From: Leidyana gryllorum EB-2025a
Lineage: Eukaryota; Protista; Apicomplexa
DNA length: 64,000 nt
Assembly: GCA_048772705.1 (NCBI GenBank)
Contig: JBLWGC010000104.1
Coordinates: 744,001 to 808,000, forward strand
Direction: 5' to 3'
Under the pieces are notes generated by a model, which worked only from the letters and a program-made list of their open reading frames with translations, did not search any database and was not told the origin of the DNA. Shown here in pieces: positions 310 through 48,459 of this stretch (positions are counted from its first letter, which is position 1; every line of letters starts with the position of its first letter). A program made the position numbers and the translations under genes.

Positions 310-1098
310 TCAAAGGCTGCTGTCTTTGTGGGCAATCCAGGCTTCAAACAAGAATCCACGGAACCAATCGTAATAACGGGTGAATCCAGCATCTCTGAGC
401 CTCTTCTCGTGGGTGATGATAGTGTCAGGTAGGAGCACCCCTTCCAAAGCCCGTTCTTTCAGCGCTATCTCCTCCTCCGAGTATCCATTGAGTGCCTTGA
501 AGTTGTGATAGAGTTCGCGCAAATACGCCTGATCAGTCTCGTTCTCGGCTTTGCACTTCTCAGCCAGGATCAGTATGCCGCCAGGAAGCAGAACATCGTA
601 TATGTGCGCGATCAAGGCGTCGCGACTTGAGGGGTCCAGGAACTGCAGAGTGAACGTACACAATACCATGTGACAGGGCTTCAGCCGCATCTTGGTGATG
701 TCTCCGAGTATCACCTCGGTCTCGGCGTTGGTAACTTGGGCCTGCAAATACTTGGTGGCTGCTTGAACCATCGGTTCAGACGAGTCGATGGCAACGATCT
801 GAGACCCCGCATTAATGGGGAGGCCTTTGCTGGCGGCGATGGCGGCGTGTCCCCAAGCAGCTCCCAAATCATATATCAGCAGCTTCTCCTCGGGTTGGAC
901 TTGGAGGGTGCGGGTAATGGCAGTAATTCCGTCCAAGAGCAGTTCGTAGCCCGGAATCGAGCGCCTGATCATGTCATCAAAAACCTCGGAGACTGTAGCC
1001 CCAAACTCGAATGGGAAGGGGGGCTCAACGCCCTTGAAGACCTCATCTTTCTGTCGGAGGGGGAGAGAACCTGCGTCAGATGCGAGAGGTTTAGTCAT
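310..1098 (-). CDS. cmoA: CmoA-like (carboxy-S-adenosyl-L-methionine synthase family) class I SAM-binding protein, intronless
   Basis: Motifs FEFGATVSEVFDDMIRRSIPGY, YDLG, FTLQFL, LLPGGILILAEK, FKALNGYSEEEI and RLRDAGF match the bacterial CmoA pattern along the full length. Confidence 0.88.
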   Translation of the reverse strand: MTKPLASDAGSLPLRQKDEVFKGVEPPFPFEFGATVSEVFDDMIRRSIPGYELLLDGITAITRTLQVQPEEKLLIYDLGAAWGHAAIAASKGLPINAGSQIVAIDSSEPMVQAATKYLQAQVTNAETEVILGDITKMRLKPCHMVLCTFTLQFLDPSSRDALIAHIYDVLLPGGILILAEKCKAENETDQAYLRELYHNFKALNGYSEEEIALKERALEGVLLPDTIITHEKRLRDAGFTRYYDWFRGFLFEAWIAHKDSSL

Positions 1099-1135: not shown

Positions 1136-1859
1136 TCAATTGGCGTGTTGAAGCCCGTCGAATGATTTACAGGGTTTGACTGGCTGGAGGTTGAGGAAAA
1201 AATACGGAGTCTCCAATCGGAAATGGCTCAACATGAGATAACAAGACACATAACTACAGAAAAATAGCCTCAAATACAGCTTAAGCATAAGCATTAGCGA
1301 GTATGTCATAAAGAAACATACTCGTGATGGGGTCTCCGGTGCCACACGTCACACAGAGTACGCCCAAGAGTTCGCTCAGATGAGACTGTATCATCTATTT
1401 GGGTTGCTATTTGCATGTCGTCGGCCGACAGCGGTTGGGAGAGTGTTCTCGTATCATTCAATTTCAGACACACTTTCCCTTCAAAGCCCAGTAGAGATAC
1501 AATCATGATGAGATGGAGTTCCAGCACGGGATCTGTTCCGAAGGGCCAGCGAAATACAGCTAATCCCTCCTCCTCATGTAGTCAGGCAGTTAATGCGCTC
1601 GTCAATAGGAGACTTCAATGACATCTTCGTCTAGTCCGATAACAGGATAGGCATGACACGTTTGCAGCAGTGATATCTCGAGGTCGGACGGACGACCCCA
1701 AGGCCCGTATTTGTGCCCTGCGGACTCATTCACATGATCTTCCACCTGGAGTCGCACCAGGTTGGCAACAGCTTCCACCTCCCTAAAATACTGAGGGAGT
1801 GACCTCGTTTGGGAGCTTTCCAGACATGATTCCTTAGTACGAACGGGGGAGCACGCCAT
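1136..1859 (-). CDS. Hypothetical spliced protein (about 3 exons)
   Basis: ORFs 1602-1859, 1306-1527 and 1136-1345 can be joined by GT-AG introns (e.g. GTATGT...CTGTAG). No recognisable motif. Confidence 0.4.
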
Positions 1860-1985
1860 CAGAATTTGTAGCGATCAAATCTAAAGTCTAACGCAGAGAT
1901 TGGGGTTTTCAAGATTCAGATTCTTTTGGGTTAAAGACGTGTCAGGTGTGTCTTGCGCCATCTGATCTTCACATTGCCTAACTAA

Positions 1986-3800
1986 CTATCGATCTAAACG
2001 TGTAACATAGGGTGAGTCGCCGAGACTTCGCCCTTTGGTCTCACGAACAAAGAAGACCATCACCCCCACCGACAGCAGGGATAGTGCTAAAAGCAAAAGC
2101 GAGTATGTTGTGGCCAACCAAGTGTGTCAAACTGGGAGTGGGGACTGGGCCAGATGGAGGGGGATAGCAGTTGGGTGGAGGCCCGTGAGAGCCGCAAATG
2201 TGTGGCCAATGTGTGCGGTCCACCTACCCGTGAATACGACAAAGTTGGTTCGCAAACGGAGGTACCGAGACGCACACACAATCGCGATAGCGGCCAACCA
2301 ATTACAAGCAACCGCCAGGCTGCTTGAACCGCTTTTAATTTCAAGCGGATACACTTCGAATAGATACACCCATAATATGGGGCCGTAACCAATCGCAAAC
2401 GAAAGAATGAACCCCAACACAGAAGCAGGGCCCGCCCAGGTTGCAAAGATGGTACCAGGGTAGACCCAATAAGCAACAAGGGCAGGCAGCAACGACACTG
2501 TTTGGAAGATGCAGCCCCAGATCAGTAACTTCCGTCGTCCGGTACGCTCAATGAGGAATGCAGCTGGAAAAGTTGCCACAACATTGATGAAGAAAATGAT
2601 GGTGGTGCACACAGCTGCCCATTGTTCAGACAGCCGTGCCTCGCGGAACATATCAGTGCTAGCCGATACAAACACGTTGATACCGCTGAGTTGTTGGAAG
2701 GCAGATAGCACGCATCCCAGAACTATTACATTCCGCAACTCTCGGAAGCGCAAAGCTTTCCGAAGACTCATTCCTGCTCGCTGTGCCACTTGAGAGGTTT
2801 GTACTTCAGTTTGGATCATTGTCAGTTCGATGGTAACGTCATCTTTATCATTAACATGCTGAAGGACCCGCAACGCCTCCAAATCACGTTGTCGGCGGAG
2901 ATACCAGTGAGGTGTCTCAAAGGGGAAGGCATAACCGAGCAGATAGCCGCCAATTGCGACAGGTATCAAAGTAATCAGTACACTGCCGCGCCACCAGAGT
3001 TTCCCGAATAGACTGGGCGTCGTGAACAGATCACTCCTCCACGTAGAGGTGCGATGTTGATCTGGAATGGGATCAAAGAAAGCCAAGGGGAGCCCAATGG
3101 CGGTACCAACCAAGATACCCGTGACAATGAAGATCTGGTGAAAGATGCCGTAGAATCCTCGAACTTTGGGAGGTGTCATTTCGGAGAGGTATGTTGGCAC
3201 CGCCACGCTGGCCACCCCAACCGCATAGCCATCAACTAGGCGTGCCCAAACGAACGACTCCCAAGTGTGGCTCACGACAGTCGTCACAGCACCAAAGAAG
3301 AACAGAGCAAAGGAAATCAGTATAGTTGTCCGCCTTCCAGCGTTGAGCAGTCCGCTGCAAGTCAATGCTCCCAACGTGGCGCCGATGAAGAGGGCCGTGG
3401 TGATCCAGGCTTCGTAATTCAGGGCCTGGGTGCATTCGTGGGGCGTTCTGAGTACCTCTTCTGCCCCGGCACACCAGTTCATTTCCCAGGCGATGTGTCC
3501 GAGGCATGTATTGAGTTGGCTCACACTGAAACCGAACAAGAAAGAACCGATACACGCAGCCAGTACCACCTTGCTGACATTGGGCAGCGGTTGTAGGCGG
3601 GACTTGCGTTCTGGATGTGTCGGGTCCAGAGGAGTGATTTCGTCGGGGTCAATCGCTCTTGGGACATGTAGAGCTTCTTCCTCTTGGAGTATGTCCGCTA
3701 ATACACCGGCTGGATCGGGTCGCGGGTCCGAACCCATTTGTACCAAAGACATAGCAGTGCTATCATCCAAGATTCTACTTTGTGAACTGGAACTTGTCAT
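1986..3800 (-). CDS. MFS sugar porter, apicomplexan HT1/GT1-like hexose transporter
   Basis: Motifs GRR, YLSEMTPPKVRG, FQQLSGIN, IERTGRRKLL, GYGPILWVYLFEVYP. A final exon after a ~137-nt intron gives VRETKG...DSPY and a stop at 1986. Confidence 0.93.
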
Positions 3801-4692: not shown

Positions 4693-6012
4693 CTAGTTGT
4701 AAATATCCAGATGAAGTCGGGCGGGGCGATGACGCAGCTTGATGTCAACATCGTGGCAGCATTCCCCTTCACAAGGCGGGCATGGCTCCTCCACGCATGG
4801 CGGAAGGGATGGGCATATGATTTCCATCGTGCTCGATGCGGTTTCGGCCGGAGCAGTGGTCGTAGGTGTGGTCTCAGCCGGAGCAGTGGTCGTAGGTGTG
4901 GTCTCAGCCGGAGCAGTGGTCGTGGGTGTGGTCTCAGGCGGAGCAGTGGTCGTGGGTGTGGTGGCAATGGGGACTTCGGCAGTGGTGGACAACAGGGTGT
5001 CACCATCGAGAGTAACAGTGGGAACGATTGGGTCGATAGTCATGGTCAACGGAGGGAGGAGTGTTGGGACAACAGTGGACCCGGGAACACACTCTATGGC
5101 AGCGACTTCAGAGATGATTTTGTCGAGTTGGAGCCAGAAGTCCAATGACGATCCAGCAAGAGGACGAACAAACTCCTCTGGTTGTCCAATGTAGGAGTTG
5201 AACCATTTCCACGATTCAGACGGCAGGCTGTTCCACCACTCTCCATCGAATATCAAGAAGGAGGCGTACAGTTCACGGGCCTCCAGGGCCTTCTTGACTT
5301 GTGCGGGAGAGGGATAGTACTCAGTTGTGCACTGGCGTTCGGCCTCGGCTTCCTTGAAGATCCCGCTGAAGGTGCTCATACCGTAGCCATTCAGACCATC
5401 TCCTTCAAAGTGAGGAGGAGCGTCTGTGACCACGACAACCAACTTGGCGGCTTCGAGATTATTCCAGCCCACAGTTTGAGACTCACTGAGAGCCACGAGG
5501 GCTCCGAATTGGTTTTCGCTCGGATCTCCACCGCCGAGAGCTTGGAGCTTGTCGTACACCGCCGTCAATTCATCCTTGTCGGCAGTTAGAGGCAGCTCAA
5601 ACTTCTGGCAGTAATCGGTTCGGGGCTCGCCCAGAGACCACACGGGTTTGTCTCTGAAGGAGACTACGGAGAAAGTAGTACCAGGATGAAGTTGAGACAA
5701 CATTTCCACCATCAGGGGCAATTGCACATCTCTCATCTCCGGAAAGTCATCGGCAAAGCTACGAGTAGCGTCTTGCAGGATGACGATTTCGAGAGGGAAG
5801 GTGCAGTCATCGGTGGATCGATGCTTAAAGTAGTTTTCGGGACGACCAATGCGAGTGCTCTGACGAGCGTGCCACGGGTCCATTCCCTCAACAGGTTGTA
5901 CAGATCCGTAGACATCCTCCAGAGACTTGCCTCCGGCAGAAACCGGTTCCATCTGCTCCTTGGAAGCACCCACAAGGGCAAAGACGAGGGCCAAAAGCTG
6001 GAAGCCACGCAT
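4693..6012 (-). CDS. Secreted VWA (integrin-beta I-like) domain protein with mucin-like Thr/Pro stalk
   Basis: Signal peptide; MIDAS-like LQDATRSF; FSVVSFRDKP; GGGDPSEN; VVVVTDAPPH; TTPTTTAPAE repeats; Cys-rich C-terminus. Confidence 0.85.
   Translation of the reverse strand: MRGFQLLALVFALVGASKEQMEPVSAGGKSLEDVYGSVQPVEGMDPWHARQSTRIGRPENYFKHRSTDDCTFPLEIVILQDATRSFADDFPEMRDVQLPLMVEMLSQLHPGTTFSVVSFRDKPVWSLGEPRTDYCQKFELPLTADKDELTAVYDKLQALGGGDPSENQFGALVALSESQTVGWNNLEAAKLVVVVTDAPPHFEGDGLNGYGMSTFSGIFKEAEAERQCTTEYYPSPAQVKKALEARELYASFLIFDGEWWNSLPSESWKWFNSYIGQPEEFVRPLAGSSLDFWLQLDKIISEVAAIECVPGSTVVPTLLPPLTMTIDPIVPTVTLDGDTLLSTTAEVPIATTPTTTAPPETTPTTTAPAETTPTTTAPAETTPTTTAPAETASSTMEIICPSLPPCVEEPCPPCEGECCHDVDIKLRHRPARLHLDIYN
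4847..4962. repeat. 30-bp coding tandem repeat (ETTPTTTAPA), 3-4 copies
   Basis: Unit GCCGGAGCAGTGGTCGTAGGTGTGGTCTCA is repeated with 1-2 substitutions. Confidence 0.9.
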
Positions 6013-7085: not shown

Positions 7086-8429
7086 CTACGCATTTACCAC
7101 ATCGAAAGCGTCGATGTGAACTTCAACTCCAGCACCCGCCCGGGGGAAATCCTTCATGAGCTCCTTGTGCTTGTTGAGAGAGGTTTCGAGTTCGTCGTCT
7201 CCCAAGTCGTTGACGAAGTAACATTCACCAAGCGGACGCGGTACAGCAGCCCTCAGGAGTCCATCCCGAGTTTGCACGATTGCCTTGGATCCTTTCTTCA
7301 TCAGATCGATAGTGAGGAGTTCGTGGTCCAAAGCAAGTCCCACTTGAGACATGGTGGTGATGATACGCTTCCATTCGTTCTCATCAATGTAGCCACGAGT
7401 GAGAGCCAGAGTGGTGGAGTAGGCCATGTCGATGTTTACAGCGTGGCCGTGACGAAGAGGCACCGCAGGAGTGAGCTCCAGGGTGGGGCTCCAGGTGTGG
7501 CCGAAGGCAATGACTCTGTCGAGCATGATCTCGTGGAGGTTGGGAGACTCAAGTTCGAGCATCTTCTTGATGCCGCGATAGCAGATCTCGTGAGCGGCTT
7601 CCTTAACTTCTTCGTCCGACCCCTCGATTTGGCCGAAACGAGTGGAGATCAATTGAGGACCCCACTTCTCCAGCAGGTCGAAAACACGGCTTTCGCCCAC
7701 AGTAGCGATCTTGATGAGCTCTGCGATACCGTTGCGGATCTGAGCCTCGGGGAGGGTGCGAAGGAAGGTGAAATCGAGAAAGGTCATCAGAGGAGCGTGG
7801 TAGGCTCCCAGGCGGTTCTTGAGCTTCTTATGGTTCACGGCAACCTTAATTGCGATGGAGGCGTCGATCAGACCAATGACCGTGGTCGGGATACGGATGA
7901 AGTTACTGCTTCGCTTATATGCAGCGCAAGCGAAACCGCCAACGTCGCTGATCAAACCACCTCCAACTACCAGAACGGGTTCTTTGCGTAGCAGGCCGAA
8001 TTCGGCCAATTTATCTTCCATCTTCAACATCGTTTCCATGGTCTTGACATTCTCGTTCATTTCCATCGAGTGGAGTTCAAAATCCAATTTGTAGTGAGAG
8101 AAATAGGCTCTCATATCATCGCCGTACAACTTGGCCACGTTCGAGTCCACTATAGCCAGACAGCGGCCCCAAGTCATGTAGTAGTTTGCCAAGTCGGGCT
8201 TGGCAGTGTCGAAGATGTGATCCACAAACTTGAAATCGTAGCGGATGATCTCTCGGGCTTCAACTCGGAAACCGTCTTCAAGAACATTCACAACGCCCTT
8301 CGCGTCAGTGCCATCAATCTTCATACCCGGCTTCTCCATCACGTTGTTGTTCATCATGGTAGAAGACTCTTCCATTACAGTGGAAGGAGTAGCAACTTCA
8401 ACAACTGGAACATAAGTGGTCGACGCCAT
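7086..8429 (-). CDS. mysA: Sedoheptulose-7-phosphate cyclase, demethyl-4-deoxygadusol synthase type (DDGS/MysA), intronless
   Basis: GGGLISDVGGFA, RIPTTVIGLIDAS, KNRLGAYHAP, and the DDGS-diagnostic MLELESPNLHE..LDRVIAFGHTWSP, then HGHAVNIDM and TRDGLLRA. First ATG is at 8429. Confidence 0.92.
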   Translation of the reverse strand: MASTTYVPVVEVATPSTVMEESSTMMNNNVMEKPGMKIDGTDAKGVVNVLEDGFRVEAREIIRYDFKFVDHIFDTAKPDLANYYMTWGRCLAIVDSNVAKLYGDDMRAYFSHYKLDFELHSMEMNENVKTMETMLKMEDKLAEFGLLRKEPVLVVGGGLISDVGGFACAAYKRSSNFIRIPTTVIGLIDASIAIKVAVNHKKLKNRLGAYHAPLMTFLDFTFLRTLPEAQIRNGIAELIKIATVGESRVFDLLEKWGPQLISTRFGQIEGSDEEVKEAAHEICYRGIKKMLELESPNLHEIMLDRVIAFGHTWSPTLELTPAVPLRHGHAVNIDMAYSTTLALTRGYIDENEWKRIITTMSQVGLALDHELLTIDLMKKGSKAIVQTRDGLLRAAVPRPLGECYFVNDLGDDELETSLNKHKELMKDFPRAGAGVEVHIDAFDVVNA

Positions 8430-8729
8430 CTTCCTCAGATCAGGTAGTGGAAAGTAAAACACTTCGAGAAAGAATGAGCAGAGGAAGGCAAGAAGACCAC
8501 GTCAGATCGTCTTTTCAATATCAATACCATGCTATATGCCAATGTCCCACTCCGCACACCTCACCAAACTGGTTCTCTGGCACACAAACCGCGACCAACT
8601 GATCGAGAGTGACCACCCTATTGACGACTGCGGGCCTGTTCGTTGGTGTTCTGCGTATGTGTGTGTGTGTGTTGTTTGTGTGGGTCTGGGCTGAGAGTCG
8701 CACGCTGTGCGTCGATCAAACTGAGGTTT

Positions 8730-11700
8730 TCATAATATGAATACTGTGTTCGCATTGCTCCAGAAAATGCGCCGAGTGGGCCAAAGAAGATCGCCTGTCT
8801 GTGCCACCAAATATAGCTTTGGGTACAGGGCTAAGCCCTCTGCTGCTTCCACCATCAGACCCCCCACTGGCAAACTGCACTTTCCTGTTCGCGAAATGAC
8901 AAACCCATACTCCAGTTTGACACTCCCCCCCGGTATCAGACACATAGTCGACTGCTTGGTACCCGATACGAGCACTGCACTCATATTCGGCTCTCTGTAG
9001 TCTTCGAACGCGGCAAAGTTTGTTTGCCACGCCCCCTTGTCGCCACCTTCCAGGAACAGCTGGTACTTACATTTCTGCCACAACATGGGATCGTTCAACT
9101 CATTTCTAAGAACTCACCACGGCGGACATGGTGTGGTTGGTGATCACCAACACCGCTCTAATGACTTGCGCAACTGAAAATGTTCGAATATTCAAATTCG
9201 GGATCACCGCCTCAGATGGCAACAGTCTCATACTCAATGTGATCGGTTGCTTCTGCAATGGATGCACACTGATCGTCCCGCCGGGAGTGTGATTCCGGGG
9301 TACTGAGGCGAAGAAGTGATCGAGCATTTCGATCAGGGGCCGCCATGGGACTTCCAGCAACACAGAAATTCGAGGCCATAACGGCTCACGATTCACATCT
9401 CGTAGCTGTGGGCACCGCCAAGGTGCTGTGGCCTCCAGGTACAATGCCCATAGTGGGGATGAGCCACCCTCTGGGAGTTGAGGTTGGGGAACGCCCAACT
9501 GTGTGAACAGATTGGATACAAATTCTCGGACAAAGCGTTGCAGTAATCCTCCCAACGAGGGTCTCTCCGCCAGCAGATGTAACCAATGATGGAAGCTCCA
9601 TCTCACCGAATGATCAGTCGAGCTGACCAGGTCGAAGAGATGTTGGGAGGGTTGGTGGCACACAGAGGTCAGATCCAAGACATTCTCTTCCTTCCAGAAT
9701 ACCGCTGCTCTCTCACTTTCTCTCCAAACCGGTACGGGTTGTTGAGGAGCAAAGCGTAAGAACCGGGCACGGAATGGTGTCGGGTCACCTGTGGTAACCA
9801 AACAGCTGCGAGTCAACTTGAGTGGAACTCCTCCCGACTCCACTGATGGATGCAGTGTGAACTCCAACACACTCTCAGGAGCCGCAGAGAAGGTCCACTT
9901 GAAAGGCACGGATACATTCACTCTCCGTGGCGTCGTGGCCGTTCGAGAGAACAATGGTCTCTCGTCTCCGCCATTTTCAAATCGCACCGTCAACTTGGCT
10001 GTGGCCACCACCCCCGCAAAAGAGTGAGGCATGCAATAGCCCAAGAGCTTAACCTCAACTTCACTCGGAGACAGATCGGTCACCAAGCCCAAAATCCGAG
10101 ACGATAGAGTTTCTGACGAGACGGCCTCTTCGAACACGAGAGGCTGACCGTCCAGCGCCATTAAATCTCCGTCTTCTCCTTGACGAGCAAAATAACATCT
10201 GTGCGACGCCTGAGATCCTTTGAGGTCCGAAAGAGTCCCAACATTCGAGATTAAGACCCTCAGGTCACTCAGCGTGTGGTAAATCACACTTCCACCCATC
10301 TCACTTGACTCATTCGTAGCCAGACACCCCTTCCACATGGGAGATCCATCTTTGCTGGTGACCGGGGTTACAGACCCATCCAAGGATACAAAACGCACTG
10401 GGACCAAATGACTGAGCCCTTCCCTCTCGCACTGGACTTCAAGCACGAATTGAGTCCGGGGAAGCCGTTGCGCCGTCCTGCGAAGAGTGGCACTCAACAA
10501 TTGTGCGACAATTGAAACTTACATCACTGGCAGTGCCAGTCGATTGATCCGCATTGTCAAGATGAACGGTAAGCCTTTGGGTGTGAGAGCGTCTATGTGA
10601 GAGGTGCTGACGCAATCCGTGATCCAGTGAAGGCGTAGATCCATCATTGTTGTACGGAAGTCGTTGATGAAGAGACATCGGCGATTGACTTCTGGGACCT
10701 CCGTGGGGACTTCGGGAGTCTTCACCGCCCAGTCCGTGGCTCTACGGAACTCCAAACCCTCGTAGGCCAGCATTTCATTCCGACTTGTCCAGACCCCATA
10801 CTCCACTGCCAATACTTTCTCTGTTAGAACCGGGATGAGACATCGCACACGAGACACCCTTCCATGGCTATGGAACAGCATCATGTGGGTCAGAAGATGC
10901 GGAGTATGGACGAAAGGACTGCTTTTCGGGAGGTCGACTTCGCAACTGGCTCGAATCCAGGGCCACACCTCCGGATTTCGCCGGGGTTTGTGGTAGTGCC
11001 CTCCACTCAGTGGGTCCTCGTCGGACGCCAGTCCGTCGTTGATGGTCAATTGTTGTACCATGAGGCTATGGCCATCGATAGTAAAGCCCAGACACTCCAA
11101 TTTCCCGAACGTCTGAGTGAGGATGCACAACCGGATCCGTCGCTGATGATCTGTCGGCTCCAAGACACAGTACACCGGGAATGGATGGACCTCCAGAGCC
11201 AAGAGAGGCGGCGCTCTTTGTTGTGTCAAAGCTGTCCGATCACTCAGCTGCACCCACAGAGCGGTGAAGCTCTTTTCAAGACCTTCATCCATCACACCCC
11301 GGGACCAATCGCGGCCTTTGCGTCCTGTGTCCATAACCAGCAGAGTGTTAATGATCTTTGTGGCCGTCCACAACGCCATCTCGGGTGGGAAAGGAGCCGA
11401 GAGCAACGATGGACTCAACGACGGCGCGGAATGTCCCACTGCTTCGAGCGCAAATGAGGGATCCGAGCTGAGGAACTGCAGCAGGCGATTGATTTCTGCT
11501 GCTGGGAGATCCTCGACTTTGGATTTGGTCATCATGAAGTGCACTCTCACAGCGGCGTCCAGGAGGCCTTTGAGAGCACTCGGGGAGATCACAGCCATAT
11601 CCAGATTGGGGACGGCTCGAGCATTCTCGGGTATTGCGTCCTCAATGATCTTCGGATGTTCAATGTTAAGTGTGGTTAACATACCCGACAGTGCACGTTT

Positions 11701-14462
11701 CAGAGCGGTCCGCGCAGCCGCTGGACAACTTTTATGCGAAGAGTTTGTTAATCTGCCCGTCTGCTTACCACGACACCAATCTCTCTTGAGGTCTCTGTCC
11801 ACTGATCAATTGGTCCAGCCACTGGTGGTGGTAATAGGAGCTGAATCTTCGGGCATTCTTGGGAGTGTTGGATCCCGCGCCTTTGATCGGTTGGTCCATC
11901 GGGAAATCTCGTAATCTCAGATCGTCGTGACCGAAAACGGGGCAGAAGGGCGGTGTGACGTACGCCACCGACCTCATTGTGGCGGGCATAATGATCGGAG
12001 ATGCGGGAGAGAGTGGTGCGAAGGCTTCACCAGATTGCCCCGAACAGTCATAGACCGACCGGGGGTCCATGGCAGGATCGCTGGAGGTTGTCGTCGCGGG
12101 AGACGGCTCGAGGGCCGTAGTTCGCACCACCTCTAAGCACATGAGACAATAGAGTTTGAAACTGAATGCATAAATGCCAACAGCGTGCAGATGGTTGGCC
12201 ACATCGAGTAGTTGACGCATAACTTTCCCGGGCCGTTGGTTGTTGAGCTGCAGAGCGGTGGGCCAATTTGAGACAATGATGGGAGAGTACCGTACCAAAT
12301 GAAAGTGGATAGACTGTGTGGCCAGACTGATCAGTACACACAAGATGCTGGGCTCAGCCAACTGAGACGGGTAGACGACGAAAGGCAAATGGGTAAAGGC
12401 AAAGTCTTTGGGGACTTGGCGTTTGAGAGTCAATCCCCGCAAGAACATATTGGAGAATCCCACGCCCTGATCTGTGATCGGCAATGGCAGATGTCCCAAA
12501 TAACGTGATGGGATCATTCGACAGTCCTTATTGAAGTCCACTTTGAGGAAAGTGTGCCACAACGGTGCTGCCAACCATTTCCGGATGTGCGACAGATATC
12601 GTTGAGCGCATTCCAGATGATACGCGGGCTCCGACCAGTCTCGGACAAACTTCTCCGGTGAATGGATGGTCATCTGCTTCGCCAGGAGACGGTGCAATAT
12701 CGTCAATGAGTACAAATTGAGAAAGTCCAAGGGAGGGAGATCGTGTGGTGTATTGACGAGTAAACCTGCGGTATTGCGAGATGAGTCACGGAGACGGCAC
12801 TTACTTCGAGTTCGCTTGAACAGAGTGATGATCTCACCGCCATGGATTCCCTCTTGCGCCAGAAGAATACTCCGAACGGTGACGAGAGTGGCCACCTGTG
12901 CCACCAAAGGTTTGTGACCATCCAGAGAGCCCATGACTGACCTACCGCCGCTCGTTCTGCGTGACCTCCCAATGATCCACAACCCCAGACTCCGTGACTC
13001 GAGACGTTTTGGGGGTGAGCAAACTTCCAGACGGGTTGACGACTCAACTGGTGTCCCACATACTCGGCTACAAATAGCGTCAAACGAGTCAGTCGGCCGG
13101 ACCAACGCACCATTGGGCCACGCCGGCGGTAACTGAGGCGGATAGTCCTGCTCCACTATGTCAAAGACAGTCAGGTAGATACTCAATGCTTCCGAGACTC
13201 GCCCTCGTAGCTCATTGCAGAACGCCAGTTTCAACAACCATTTGATCTGTTGGCAAAGCGGGGTGGAGGCGGCGATCGGGTTGGAGAAGCTGAGTGCTTA
13301 CTCTCAGCATCTGAGAAGCCAATAGTGTGACGAGATTCTCTGGAGCTGACTCCAGAGTAGGCGATATTCGCAACATGTAACGAACTAACGTCTCCAGCCA
13401 AGGCAATGGTTGCGACTGCAGTAATGTCGTGAAATTCAAACCGAGCAGAGAGCTCGCGGATGGCAGGAGACTCAAGAGCTTCTGATATCGCCGCTCTTTC
13501 TCTTTCAGGTATTCAGTGGCGTGGCCTCGGGCTGTTTTCTCTAATCTGTAGGACAAATCGGGCAACAGTTATTGGAAGAGAAGGAGACGCAGACGTACAG
13601 CGATAAACGTTTGGGAGTCTCGGTCCCCTCGACGCCCGCGAGGACAAAGAAGGATGTAAAGTCCCCTTTATGCTTCGTCATTAACACATCAAAGCACTCG
13701 AGGCACTTGTAGATACTCTTTCTGGACAGGAGATGGATAAGTCATGGCCTGTGTGGCTTACTTAACGGCTGCATTCTCCGCGTCCGATGCTCCCGATCGC
13801 TCTGTGGTCTCATGAAAGATGATCAACGGCAAGATTTTTGGAGTTGGCTGATAGTAGAATCTGGCAGTGATGAAAGACGGCTGAGAATTGGGTTAGTGGT
13901 TTTCGAGTCCCACTTGTTAAGAGTCGGCTGGCCAGCTGTGGTGGAGGGAGTCGTTGATCTACGGAATCTTTTGGGCAGCCTCGTACGCGCGACATCTTCC
14001 CGGATTCGGGTCATCCACTCCAAGGCATCTTGTTGCAGATTCAACCGTAACTCTTCTGTCGCCGTCTCCTCAGTGAGATCGTCGGTCCGAAGCGCGGTAG
14101 GGTAATTACGCCAGTCGAAAGCGAGAACAATGCATCCTGTTCGGTGCCAACGACATGTAGACAGAACGGATAGATCGGGTGAAAGTGTCACCTGGGTTCT
14201 GTTGTGTGGTTTTATGATACCATTCGACATTTACTATGCCGTTATCGGAGATGGCATCGGGGTTTGAGGGTCTTTGACGTTTAAGCAGTTCTGACAGTGC
14301 ATTGAAGCTGGTGATAACCACCTCTGGTTTTGTGTTTATGTGACGATCCTCAGGTGTGATCTGTGTGTGAGGTTTTATAAATCGTGTGAAGAGGGCGTGG
14401 ACTTCGTCATTAGGGGTTGCGATCGCAATTGGGGGTCCGCTGGAGGGTAAGATCGCTGCCAT
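8730..14462 (-). CDS. TRAPPC11: TRAPP III subunit TRAPPC11 (foie gras) homologue, multi-exon, about 1750 aa
   Basis: Minus-strand ORFs join via GT-AG introns (e.g. near 14135-14190, 13720-13760, 13550-13600, 13245-13300, 11725-11770, 10480-10522, 9075-9117). GIVNVEWYHK..NPG|CIVLAFDW, LEKTARGHATEYLKEKERR and KLAFCNELRGRVSEALSIY parallel TRAPPC11 GILKTGWMNKH..ELDW, RLENAFYEHAQTYY..EIRR and KIAFFSELKQDTQNALKNY. Confidence 0.72.
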
Positions 14463-26947: not shown

Positions 26948-30143
<3,196 letters not shown>

Positions 30144-45917: not shown

Positions 45918-48459
45918 ATGGCTACTACATTCGCCTTCAATGCTGACATTCAGCAGTTGATGAGTTTGATCATCAATACCTTCTACAGCAACAAGGACAT
46001 TTATCTGCGTGAGCTTATCTCCAACGCTTCCGATGCCATCGATAAGGCTCGCTACCGCGCCCTTACCGAACCCGACTTTGTCAAGGACGAGCCTTCTTAC
46101 ACCATCAAGCTCATCCCCAACAAGGACGCATCTACTCTTACCATTGCCGACACTGGTATTGGTATGACCAAGAACGAGTTGATCAACAACCTCGGTACTA
46201 TCGCCCGCTCTGGCACCAAGGCCTTCATGGAGGCTCTCGAGAGCTCCACTGGCGACGTCAGCATGATCGGTCAATTCGGTGTCGGTTTCTACTCGGCTTA
46301 CCTCGTCGCTGACAAGGTCACTGTTGTCACCAAGCACCCCGAAGATGAGCAATACATCTGGGAATCCGCTGCTGGTGGCTCCTTCACTGTGGCCCCCTGG
46401 ACTGAGGAGTCTGGCTACCCCAAGATCAACCGCGGTACTCACATCGTTTTGCACATGAAGGAGGACCAGGCCGAATATCTTGAGGAGCGCAAGATCCGCG
46501 ACCTCGTCAAGAAGCACTCCGAGTTCATCAACTTCAACATTGAGCTCGCCTGCAAGAAGACTAAGACTGAGGAAGTCCCTCTTGAGGGTGAGGAACTCGA
46601 GGCTGCTCTGAAGAAGGAAGCCGAGGAAAAGGAGAACAAGAAGACTGAAGGCGAAGAGGAAGAAAAGAAAGACGAAGACAAGAAGGACGACGAGGAGGAG
46701 AAGAAGGACGAGGAGGAAGAGAAAAAGGAGGACAAACCCAAGACTAAGAAGGTCACCACCGACTACGTCGAATATGAGACCCTCAACAAGAACAAACCCA
46801 TCTGGATGCGCAAACCTGAAGAGGTTACCGAGGAAGAGTACGGCAACTTCTACAAGAGCATCAGCAATGATTGGGAAAGCCACCTCGCTGTCAAGCACTT
46901 CAGCGTGGAGGGCCAACTTGAGTTCAAGGCCGTTCTCTTCGTCCCCAAACGTGCTCCCTTCGACCTCTTCGAGACTCGCAAGAAGCGCAGCAACGTCAAA
47001 CTCTATGTTCGTCGTGTCTTTATCACCGACGATTGCGAGGACCTCATCCCCGAGTGGCTCGGCTTCATCAAGGGTGTCGTCGACTCCGAGGACCTCCCTC
47101 TCAACATCTCTCGTGAGACCCTCCAACAGAACAAGATCCTCAAGGTCATCCGTAAGAACCTTGTCAAGAAGTGTCTTGAGCTGTTCGCCGAGCTCACCGA
47201 GAAGAAGGAAGACTTCCTCAAGTTCCATGAGCAGTTCGGCAAGAACCTCAAGCTCGGTGTCCACGAGGACAGCACCAACCGCGAGAAGGTAAATACAAAC
47301 AATCCGGCCTGATGAGTGAGACGGCACTCAAGCGAAAGATCACTGTTCATTAATCGCAATGATCTTGGGTAATACAGTGCTAAAATGAGGGAGTATGGAA
47401 AGAGCCTCATATGAGCCCGAGTTCTTCGGGCTCCGGGGAACACTGCCATACAACCGGTGCGGTCCTTAAGGCGTCCATGAGAGGTTGGGAGTTGCACCCG
47501 CAACAGCCCAACCCGGAGGTCAGTGTGCCTCTGGACCTCATGGAATCTGAGTCATAACCGTTCCACATCTCACTTCATCGCTACGTTTGTGTGACTGCTA
47601 CTGTACACTGAGCCCTTCGTCACACTTGTTGCCCTTTCAGATCGCTGATCTCCTGCGCTTCCACACCTCCAAGTCCGGTGATGAAGTTGTTTCACTCCGC
47701 GAGTACTGTGACCGCATGAAGGAAGGCCAGAAGGTCATCTACTACATCACTGGCGAATCCAAGGCCGCCGTCGCCAACTCGCCCTTCTTGGAGGGACTCA
47801 AGAAGCGCGGTCTTGAGGTTGTATACATGACCGACCCCATTGATGAGTATGTCGTCCAGCAACTCCGCGAGTTCGACGGAAAGAAACTCCAGTGCTGCAC
47901 CAAGGAGGGTCTCGAGCTTGCTGACTCCGAGGAGGAGAAGAAGAAGATGGAGGAGCTCAAGGCCTCCTATGAGCCTCTCTGCAAGTTGATGAAGGAAGTA
48001 CTCCACGACAAGGTCGAGAAGGTCCAACTCGGCGAGCGCGTCAGCGACTCTCCTTGTGTCCTCGTGACATCTGAGTTTGGCTGGTCCGCCAACATGGAAC
48101 GTATCATGAAGGCCCAAGCTCTTCGTGACAACAGCATGACTTCCTACATGGTTTCTAAGAAGACTATGGAGATCAATCCTCAGCACCCCATCATGCAGGA
48201 GTTGAAGAAGAAATCCGAGACTGACAAGTCCGACAAGACTGTCAAGGATCTCATCTGGCTCCTCTTCGACACTGCTCTGCTCACCTCTGGTTTCTCGCTC
48301 GACGAACCCACCAGCTTCAGCAGCCGTATCCATCGTATGATCAAGTTGGGTCTCAGCATCGATGAAGACCCCGCTGATCTCGAGGGTGAGGACTTACCTC
48401 CTCTGGAGGAGGCTGAGGGAGCAGCTGAGGAAGTTTCCAAGATGGAAGAGGTCGACTAA
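45918..48459 (+). CDS. HSP90: Cytosolic HSP90 (exons 45918-47288 and 47641-48459)
   Basis: [66 protein letters not shown]-terminal MEEVD; GT at 47289, AG at 47640. Confidence 0.99.
47306..47553 (+). ncRNA. Candidate intron-encoded structured RNA (large box C/D-like) in the HSP90 intron
   Basis: TGATGA at 47310 and CTGA at 47547 are closed by GGC/GTC, with multiple internal helices (see findings). Confidence 0.55.

Follow-up and report, generated by a model that had tools for sequence, protein, structure and literature searches.

The stretch analysed here is a 64-kb window of the Leidyana gryllorum EB-2025a assembly (C104:744001-808000; 15.5 Mb in 237 contigs), and our subject is a gene in this window for a desmethyl-4-deoxygadusol synthase (DDGS, or MysA). 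This gene probably encodes a functional DDGS that acts as the first enzyme of a complete but dispersed pathway of three genes, fungal in type, in the genome of an alveolate, a gregarine-like apicomplexan. Three proteins, the DDGS, an O-methyltransferase and a MysC-like ATP-grasp ligase, were identified and are present together in one alveolate genome, and the DDGS is conserved in relatives and under purifying selection. Beyond this, we infer enzymatic activity, a product, and the use of that product as a UV or oxidative protectant of environmental stages.

Mycosporines and the mycosporine-like amino acids (MAAs) have been recorded in cyanobacteria, fungi, algae, dinoflagellates, cnidarians and a small number of other animals, and the genes for their synthesis are adjacent or fused in cyanobacteria, fungi and dinoflagellates. 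Full-text literature searches turned up no account of a mycosporine pathway, nor of DDGS, for any apicomplexan or gregarine, and the present one appears to be the first such pathway in this parasite group. What would be new is the host lineage, the full separation of genes that elsewhere form a cluster or a fusion, and the occurrence of the fungal O-methyltransferase subtype outside fungi; the enzymes themselves would be canonical members of known families, with no new biochemistry implied. Such a gene set, complete within a small parasite genome, would offer a concrete chemical explanation of the way in which stages shed into the environment might withstand UV or oxidative stress.

Assignment of the cyclase

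The gene (Table 1) lies in an enclosing open frame at window positions 7086-8462 (minus strand), in which the ATG at 8429 opens a protein of 447 aa. This start is supported by the orthologue P0001 (contig L001, run ERR10900105), which opens with the same residues, MASTTYVPVVEV...TPSTVMEES. The N-terminus is a low-complexity extension of 48 aa, and the two-domain dehydroquinate-synthase fold is present according to Pfam (DHQ_synthase PF01761, 3.8e-31, aa 122-232; DHQS_C PF24621, 4.8e-16, aa 234-371). When compared with all solved structures, the best relative is the DDGS of Anabaena variabilis (5TPR; E 1.4e-151, 508 bits, aa 49-438), followed by the EEVS ValA (262 bits, E 9.6e-77) and by dehydroquinate synthases (DHQS) with at most 137 bits (E 5e-39 or weaker). 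The NCBIfam aroB model TIGR01357 gives 188 bits against a cut-off of 305, and its equivalog threshold is thus not reached.

The motif MLELESPNLHE occupies aa 290-300 and LDRVIAFGHTWSP aa 303-315. The exact positions of the fingerprint that tells DDGS from EEVS, which we take to be those of Kean et al. (2014) and Osborn et al. (2017), were compared with the alignments made here. At these positions (E294, A308 and T387) the query has the same residues as Anabaena DDGS, whereas ValA has L, D and H. The three residues are unchanged in 121 of 121 DDGS-type sequences, that is, the query and its 120 best database matches, as are the metal ligands E237, H311 and H327 (Glu, His, His). The existence of active-site fingerprint sites separating DDGS from EEVS has been stated before (PMC4426668, citing Kean et al. 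2014). Taken together, the order of the scores, the fingerprint residues and the unchanged metal ligands identify the product, at the level of sequence, as a DDGS-type sedoheptulose-7-phosphate cyclase and neither a DHQS nor an EEVS, in agreement with an initial annotation of the window that had named it DDGS on the basis of its motif. An exact look-up of the protein matched no record, and a search of a protein atlas returned only the same family assignment.

The same annotation had described a C/G-ending codon use similar to that of HSP90 and SAHH in the window. The GC content at third codon positions of the DDGS gene (0.636) does equal that of SAHH (0.643; the same value is found for a CmoA-like gene), but it is below that of HSP90 (0.731), and most other open reading frames of the window range from 0.43 to 0.59. 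Such codon use fits a native and perhaps well-expressed gene, and gives a weak hint of high expression.

Candidate partner genes outside the window

The 64 kb contain no relative of MysB, MysC or MysD: as tblastn queries, the three cyanobacterial proteins and the genome's own O-methyltransferase and MysC gave a single chance match (E 0.92), and no domain is fused to the DDGS. On this point the initial annotation was right, but its description of a stand-alone DDGS holds only locally, for a search of the whole genome found a putative O-methyltransferase on contig C216 and a putative MysC-like ligase on contig C51. The three genes lie on three contigs (C104, C216 and C51), neither adjacent nor fused, and one genome would in this way hold all three core genes (MysA, O-methyltransferase and MysC). 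Of the dispersed or truncated pathway that had been envisaged, it is the dispersed one that is favoured. A gene shared vertically with chromerids, together with a standard mysB/mysC set elsewhere, had also been considered, as a finding that would make the gene ordinary; of these two halves a partner set is indeed present, but its O-methyltransferase is of the fungal COMT type and not MysB. Partners called missing from a single window are thus an unreliable guide in eukaryotes.

The O-methyltransferase on C216 shares 46% identity (E 2e-52) with the N-terminal O-methyltransferase domain encoded by an 816-aa gene of Aspergillus nidulans, which adjoins the DDGS gene AN6403 and whose C-terminal half is MysC-like. 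This natural fusion of O-methyltransferase and ATP-grasp domains ties the COMT-like subtype to mycosporine synthesis. The identity to cyanobacterial MysB is only 24%. The protein also matches mammalian COMT (E 1e-45), but fungal cluster O-methyltransferases reach 214 bits versus 159 for solved COMTs. Wherever one of its 120 best database matches is named, it comes from Ascomycota, with an identity of about 40-47%. Homologues adjoin DDGS in four of the five fungal loci inspected (those of A. nidulans, Cryomyces, Verticillium and Oculimacula, not that of Septoria), and lie directly beside it in Cryomyces minteri, Verticillium nonalfalfae and Oculimacula yallundae. We therefore regard the C216 gene as a predicted fungal cluster-type (COMT-like) O-methyltransferase, and not a cyanobacterial MysB.

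In the ligase gene on C51, the two exons are separated by an intron of 52 nt (GT-AG, phase 0); they were searched and scored separately, never as a joined protein. They match the MysC of Myxosarcina, which is part of a mysA-B-C cluster, with E values of 2.7e-37 and 3.1e-20, and the NCBIfam model PRK06849 with 3e-43 and 6e-26 (148.3 and 91.3 bits scored apart, for a whole-model cut-off of 406). When exon 2 was searched against 5.8 billion proteins, the best matches were P0241, from a cyanobacterial mysA-B-D-C cluster, and P0242, from a fungal DDGS/O-methyltransferase/ATP-grasp cluster. The hydrophobic N-terminus of the protein is common to cyanobacterial and fungal MysC. On these grounds, the gene may be identified as a MysC-like ATP-grasp ligase.

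The alveolin repeat family has 16 matches genome-wide and four AP2 domains score above the cut-off, which indicates an alveolate genome of apicomplexan type and bears out the apicomplexan-like host proposed at the outset. Alveolin genes are found on C216 (Table 1) and also on C51, where an AP2 match scores below its cut-off. The presence of alveolin genes on both contigs indicates that the O-methyltransferase and the MysC-like gene belong to the same alveolate genome.

Two side observations concern the cluster of Oculimacula yallundae. A 482-aa gene at positions 1619-3208 (minus strand) of this locus, with no Pfam match on record, is a DDGS 49% identical to the query, and the cluster is thereby complete, with an NRPS-like (nonribosomal peptide synthetase-like) reductase, DDGS, O-methyltransferase and ATP-grasp ligase. 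A reductase of the kind found there was considered as a further member of the parasite set and rejected: the 14 NAD_binding_4 matches lie mostly in giant frames resembling polyketide and fatty acid synthases, or in acyl-reductase frames, and none is linked, making them uninformative. Terminal-reductase (NAD_binding_4) domains at C2:74228-74980 and C51:307306-307752 lie inside giant frames of 9878 and 7281 aa, which are presumably type I fatty acid synthase- or polyketide synthase-like megasynthases.

Predicted pathway

The characterised pathway is that of Balskus and Walsh (2010), as reviewed in PMC10666671. By analogy with it, the DDGS, an enzyme dependent on NAD+ and a metal, would cyclise sedoheptulose 7-phosphate, an intermediate of the pentose phosphate pathway, to desmethyl-4-deoxygadusol. 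The metal-dependent COMT-type O-methyltransferase on C216 would then methylate this compound to 4-deoxygadusol, and the ATP-grasp ligase on C51 would phosphorylate the C3 enol and add an amine at C3, giving a mono-substituted mycosporine. The pathway is predicted to end with a mono-substituted oxo-mycosporine, which would absorb near 310 nm, or else with 4-deoxygadusol. A protective role of such a compound in oocysts, as the initial annotation had proposed, is plausible. As for MysD, no Dala_Dala_lig_C match is present in the genome, while no search was aimed at a MysE-type nonribosomal peptide synthetase; given that no MysD was found, and with MysE not searched for, di-substituted MAAs are not expected.

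Conservation in relatives

We found that the DDGS is shared with other species. The orthologue P0001 is 83% identical to the query in amino acids and 74% in DNA, with a dN of 0.109 (nonsynonymous substitutions per site) and saturated synonymous sites, which together indicate strong purifying selection; because of the saturation, no dN/dS ratio is given. Downstream of P0001, positions 2655-3139 of L001 match window positions 5498-5982, within the VWA gene, with 70% nucleotide identity. Since the VWA match follows the DDGS orthologue, the locus is syntenic in the two species. One further public run (X1) contains contigs of two more relatives, about 90% and about 83% identical to the DDGS gene in nucleotides.

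Origin of the gene set

To place the DDGS, we computed a maximum likelihood tree (LG+C20+F+G4 with posterior mean site frequencies, PMSF; 1000 ultrafast bootstraps) from the query together with 62 of its 120 best matches, namely selected non-fungal or unnamed matches and ten named Ascomycota, with the remaining fungal near-duplicates left out; the tree has no outgroup, and its root is therefore not inferred. Cyanobacteria form one clade (100/100), and a branch with 100/98 support parts cyanobacteria and Basidiobolus from the other eukaryotes. A long stem of 0.76 leads to the parasite pair (the query and P0001), which falls outside cyanobacteria; its sister group (93/90) consists of Ascomycota and an unnamed eukaryotic clade. 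In database matches, the identity of the query to fungal DDGS is 56-62%. The closest named relatives of both the DDGS and the O-methyltransferase are fungal, amoebozoan or rotifer, and no apicomplexan, chromerid or dinoflagellate name occurs among the 120 best matches of either protein, a range that does not cover lower similarity.

A fungal-type O-methyltransferase, a DDGS on the fungal side of the tree and the three-gene content together speak for a source resembling fungi. The same pattern would follow from an ancient gene set of eukaryotes that has been lost elsewhere, and the data do not decide between the two. An origin from fungi or bacteria had been suggested in the initial annotation; the eukaryotic, fungus-side placement fits that suggestion without pointing to a particular donor. 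The set may be read as a probable case of a metabolic cluster passed from one eukaryote to another and later unlinked. More tentatively, and as a possibility to which we give somewhat less than even weight, a gregarine ancestor may have gained the whole fungal-type set from a fungus-like eukaryote; the cluster would later have been scattered and its genes kept under selection, and the parasites would themselves produce a mycosporine sunscreen or antioxidant for exposed oocysts or gametocysts. If this were true, an endogenous sunscreen pathway would be on record from Apicomplexa for the first time.

Alternative explanations

Several points weigh against a complete three-gene pathway in a gregarine-like parasite. 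The genes are unlinked, so that their co-function rests on homology and on gene neighbourhoods in fungi. No DDGS lies within 8 kb of the best match of the O-methyltransferase, in Septoria linicola; the COMT-type subfamily can thus exist without an adjacent DDGS, and the C216 enzyme could serve another catechol or enediol substrate. The C51 ligase is divergent, with identities of 31-38% and each single exon under the PRK06849 cut-off. Protein searches did not turn up the O-methyltransferase and MysC orthologues of the relatives, although thin coverage makes this result uninformative. Finally, the genome markers that were found are of alveolate or apicomplexan type only.

The Septoria locus (CP099427.1, 830045-846957) has the order kinesin, gap, COMT-type O-methyltransferase, which is that of Cryomyces, where DDGS occupies the gap. 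The 2.5-kb gap between kinesin and O-methyltransferase in Septoria shows no similarity to DDGS, which suggests that the DDGS may have been lost and the O-methyltransferase retained.

Some of these points would also be expected if the DDGS worked alone or with unknown partners and its product, desmethyl-4-deoxygadusol or some other C7-cyclitol, served as antioxidant or signal, while the C216 protein was an ordinary catechol O-methyltransferase (acting, for example, on host catechols) and the C51 ligase had an unrelated substrate. The location of the three genes on three contigs, the Septoria homologue without an adjacent DDGS and the match of the C216 protein to mammalian COMT are all in line with such an arrangement. 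We nevertheless consider it unlikely: C216 carries the sole Methyltransf_3 gene of the genome, its product is nearer to fungal cluster O-methyltransferases than to solved COMTs, the best matches of the ATP-grasp ligase sit inside mys clusters, and that a parasite genome of 15.5 Mb should contain just those three genes that make up the fungal cluster is a coincidence hard to credit.

It is very unlikely that the pathway is a relic, with the genes present but the sunscreen no longer made, as the frames are all intact, the catalytic residues are unchanged, and the two species differ by a dN of only 0.109 against saturated synonymous sites.

An enzyme of DHQS or EEVS type in place of DDGS is highly improbable. 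It is true that Pfam and NCBIfam name DHQS-type families only, and that many of the database relatives are annotated as '3-dehydroquinate synthase' or 'EEVS'. However, the aroB models remain far under their cut-offs, the solved DDGS scores well above EEVS and DHQS, and the fingerprint residues are E/A/T and not the L/D/H of EEVS. The genome moreover contains no EPSP synthase and no second DHQS homologue, and the DDGS protein therefore cannot be serving the shikimate pathway.

Contamination of the assembly by fungal or other eukaryotic DNA can be set aside as hardly credible, despite the fungal, amoebozoan or rotifer affinities of the nearest named DDGS and O-methyltransferase relatives and the lack of apicomplexan ones, because the gene lies deep in C104 (744-808 kb) with even GC among genes for HSP90, long-form SAHH, a GATA factor, a sugar transporter, H2A, a TRAPPC11-type protein and other eukaryotic proteins, alveolin and AP2 matches share the contigs of the O-methyltransferase and MysC (the AP2 match on C51 being under its cut-off), the identity to fungal DDGS is only 56-62%, and the DDGS-VWA synteny is kept in a relative.

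Comparison with known systems

The dispersed three-gene pathway that we favour may be compared with four known systems. With the DDGS of Anabaena variabilis (Ava_3858, MysA; 5TPR), the parasite protein shares the metal ligands and the E/A/T fingerprint, and the same reaction would be expected. It differs by its low-complexity N-terminal extension and by its position outside the cyanobacterial clade, and its gene is not part of an operon-like mysA-B-C-D/E cluster.

The mycosporine cluster of ascomycetes comprises the same three protein types, with the COMT-like O-methyltransferase subtype (36-47% identity) and not the MysB subtype (24%), and in the tree the fungal side is the sister of the parasite DDGS. 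However, the fungal genes are adjacent or fused, whereas those of the parasite are unfused on three contigs, with an intron of 52 nt in MysC. The DDGS of Planoprotostelium fungivorum (PROFUN_08424) is also from a protist, is 61% identical to that of the parasite and falls into the same broad group of eukaryotes in the tree, but it adjoins an O-methyltransferase of the MysB type (31% identical to Myxosarcina MysB), and the parasite O-methyltransferase has no match there.

EEVS is a member of the same superfamily with the same substrate, sedoheptulose 7-phosphate, and has a sunscreen end use in vertebrates (PMC4426668), but it is separated from the parasite enzyme by its lower score (ValA against DDGS) and by its L/D/H fingerprint. 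No partner of the MT-Ox kind came to light in the parasite, though none was looked for.

Other genes of the window

The coordinates of the genes and sites discussed above are given in Table 1.

Table 1. Positions of the cyclase gene, its predicted active-site residues, its candidate partners and neighbouring markers. Coordinates without a contig name are window positions.
Feature	Location	Strand	Remarks
Predicted DDGS (MysA-type sedoheptulose-7-phosphate cyclase) coding sequence	7086..8429	minus	447 aa + stop; one exon, uninterrupted open reading frame
Predicted active-site stretch, aa 290-315 (MLELESPNLHE..LDRVIAFGHTWSP)	7485..7562	minus	contains E294, A308 and metal ligand H311
T387 codon (VQTRDG), third DDGS-type position	7269..7271	minus	His in ValA (alignment)
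VWA protein, integrin-beta-like (PF00362), downstream neighbour of DDGS	4693..6012	minus	synteny marker, outside the pathway
Putative COMT-type O-methyltransferase	C216:167678-168472	plus	no intron; only Methyltransf_3 match in genome (PF01596, 8.9e-13)
Alveolin-repeat gene	C216:171886-172161	plus	3.4 kb downstream of the O-methyltransferase
Putative MysC-like ATP-grasp ligase, two exons	C51: exon 1 11924-12460, exon 2 10981-11871	minus	475 aa in total

Two genes of the window were considered as members of the pathway and rejected. A CmoA-like methyltransferase gene (window 310-1098, minus strand) is no substitute for MysB, as its product clearly belongs to the CmoA family and has no match to DDGS-linked O-methyltransferases. 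It is of the bacterial type (carboxy-SAM synthase), scoring 187.5 bits with TIGR00740 (cut-off 193.3) and about 1e-45 with PDB 1IM8 and 4GEK. Prephenate is the usual co-substrate of CmoA. The gene occurs here in a genome with no detected EPSP synthase, and the source of prephenate is therefore puzzling.

The second candidate was a sugar transporter of the major facilitator superfamily (window 2127-3800, minus strand; 557 aa, Sugar_tr 1.9e-66), which lies between the CmoA-like and VWA genes and is co-oriented with DDGS. It was rejected as a cluster member, for it has no tblastn match at 1e-5 or below in six loci, including the transporter-bearing DDGS loci of Verticillium and Planoprotostelium.

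The VWA protein directly downstream of DDGS has a stalk of Thr/Pro-rich repeats. SAHH (window 28356-30143, plus strand) is of the long form (plant/Plasmodium type); the match to the enzyme begins at aa 119-124 of a 595-aa frame, indicating either an N-terminal extension of about 120 aa or a later true start. The frame of HSP90 (window 45918-47312, plus strand) ends after 464 aa, within the middle domain (positions 1-253 of 518 in Pfam HSP90), and the remainder must therefore lie behind an intron or a frameshift.

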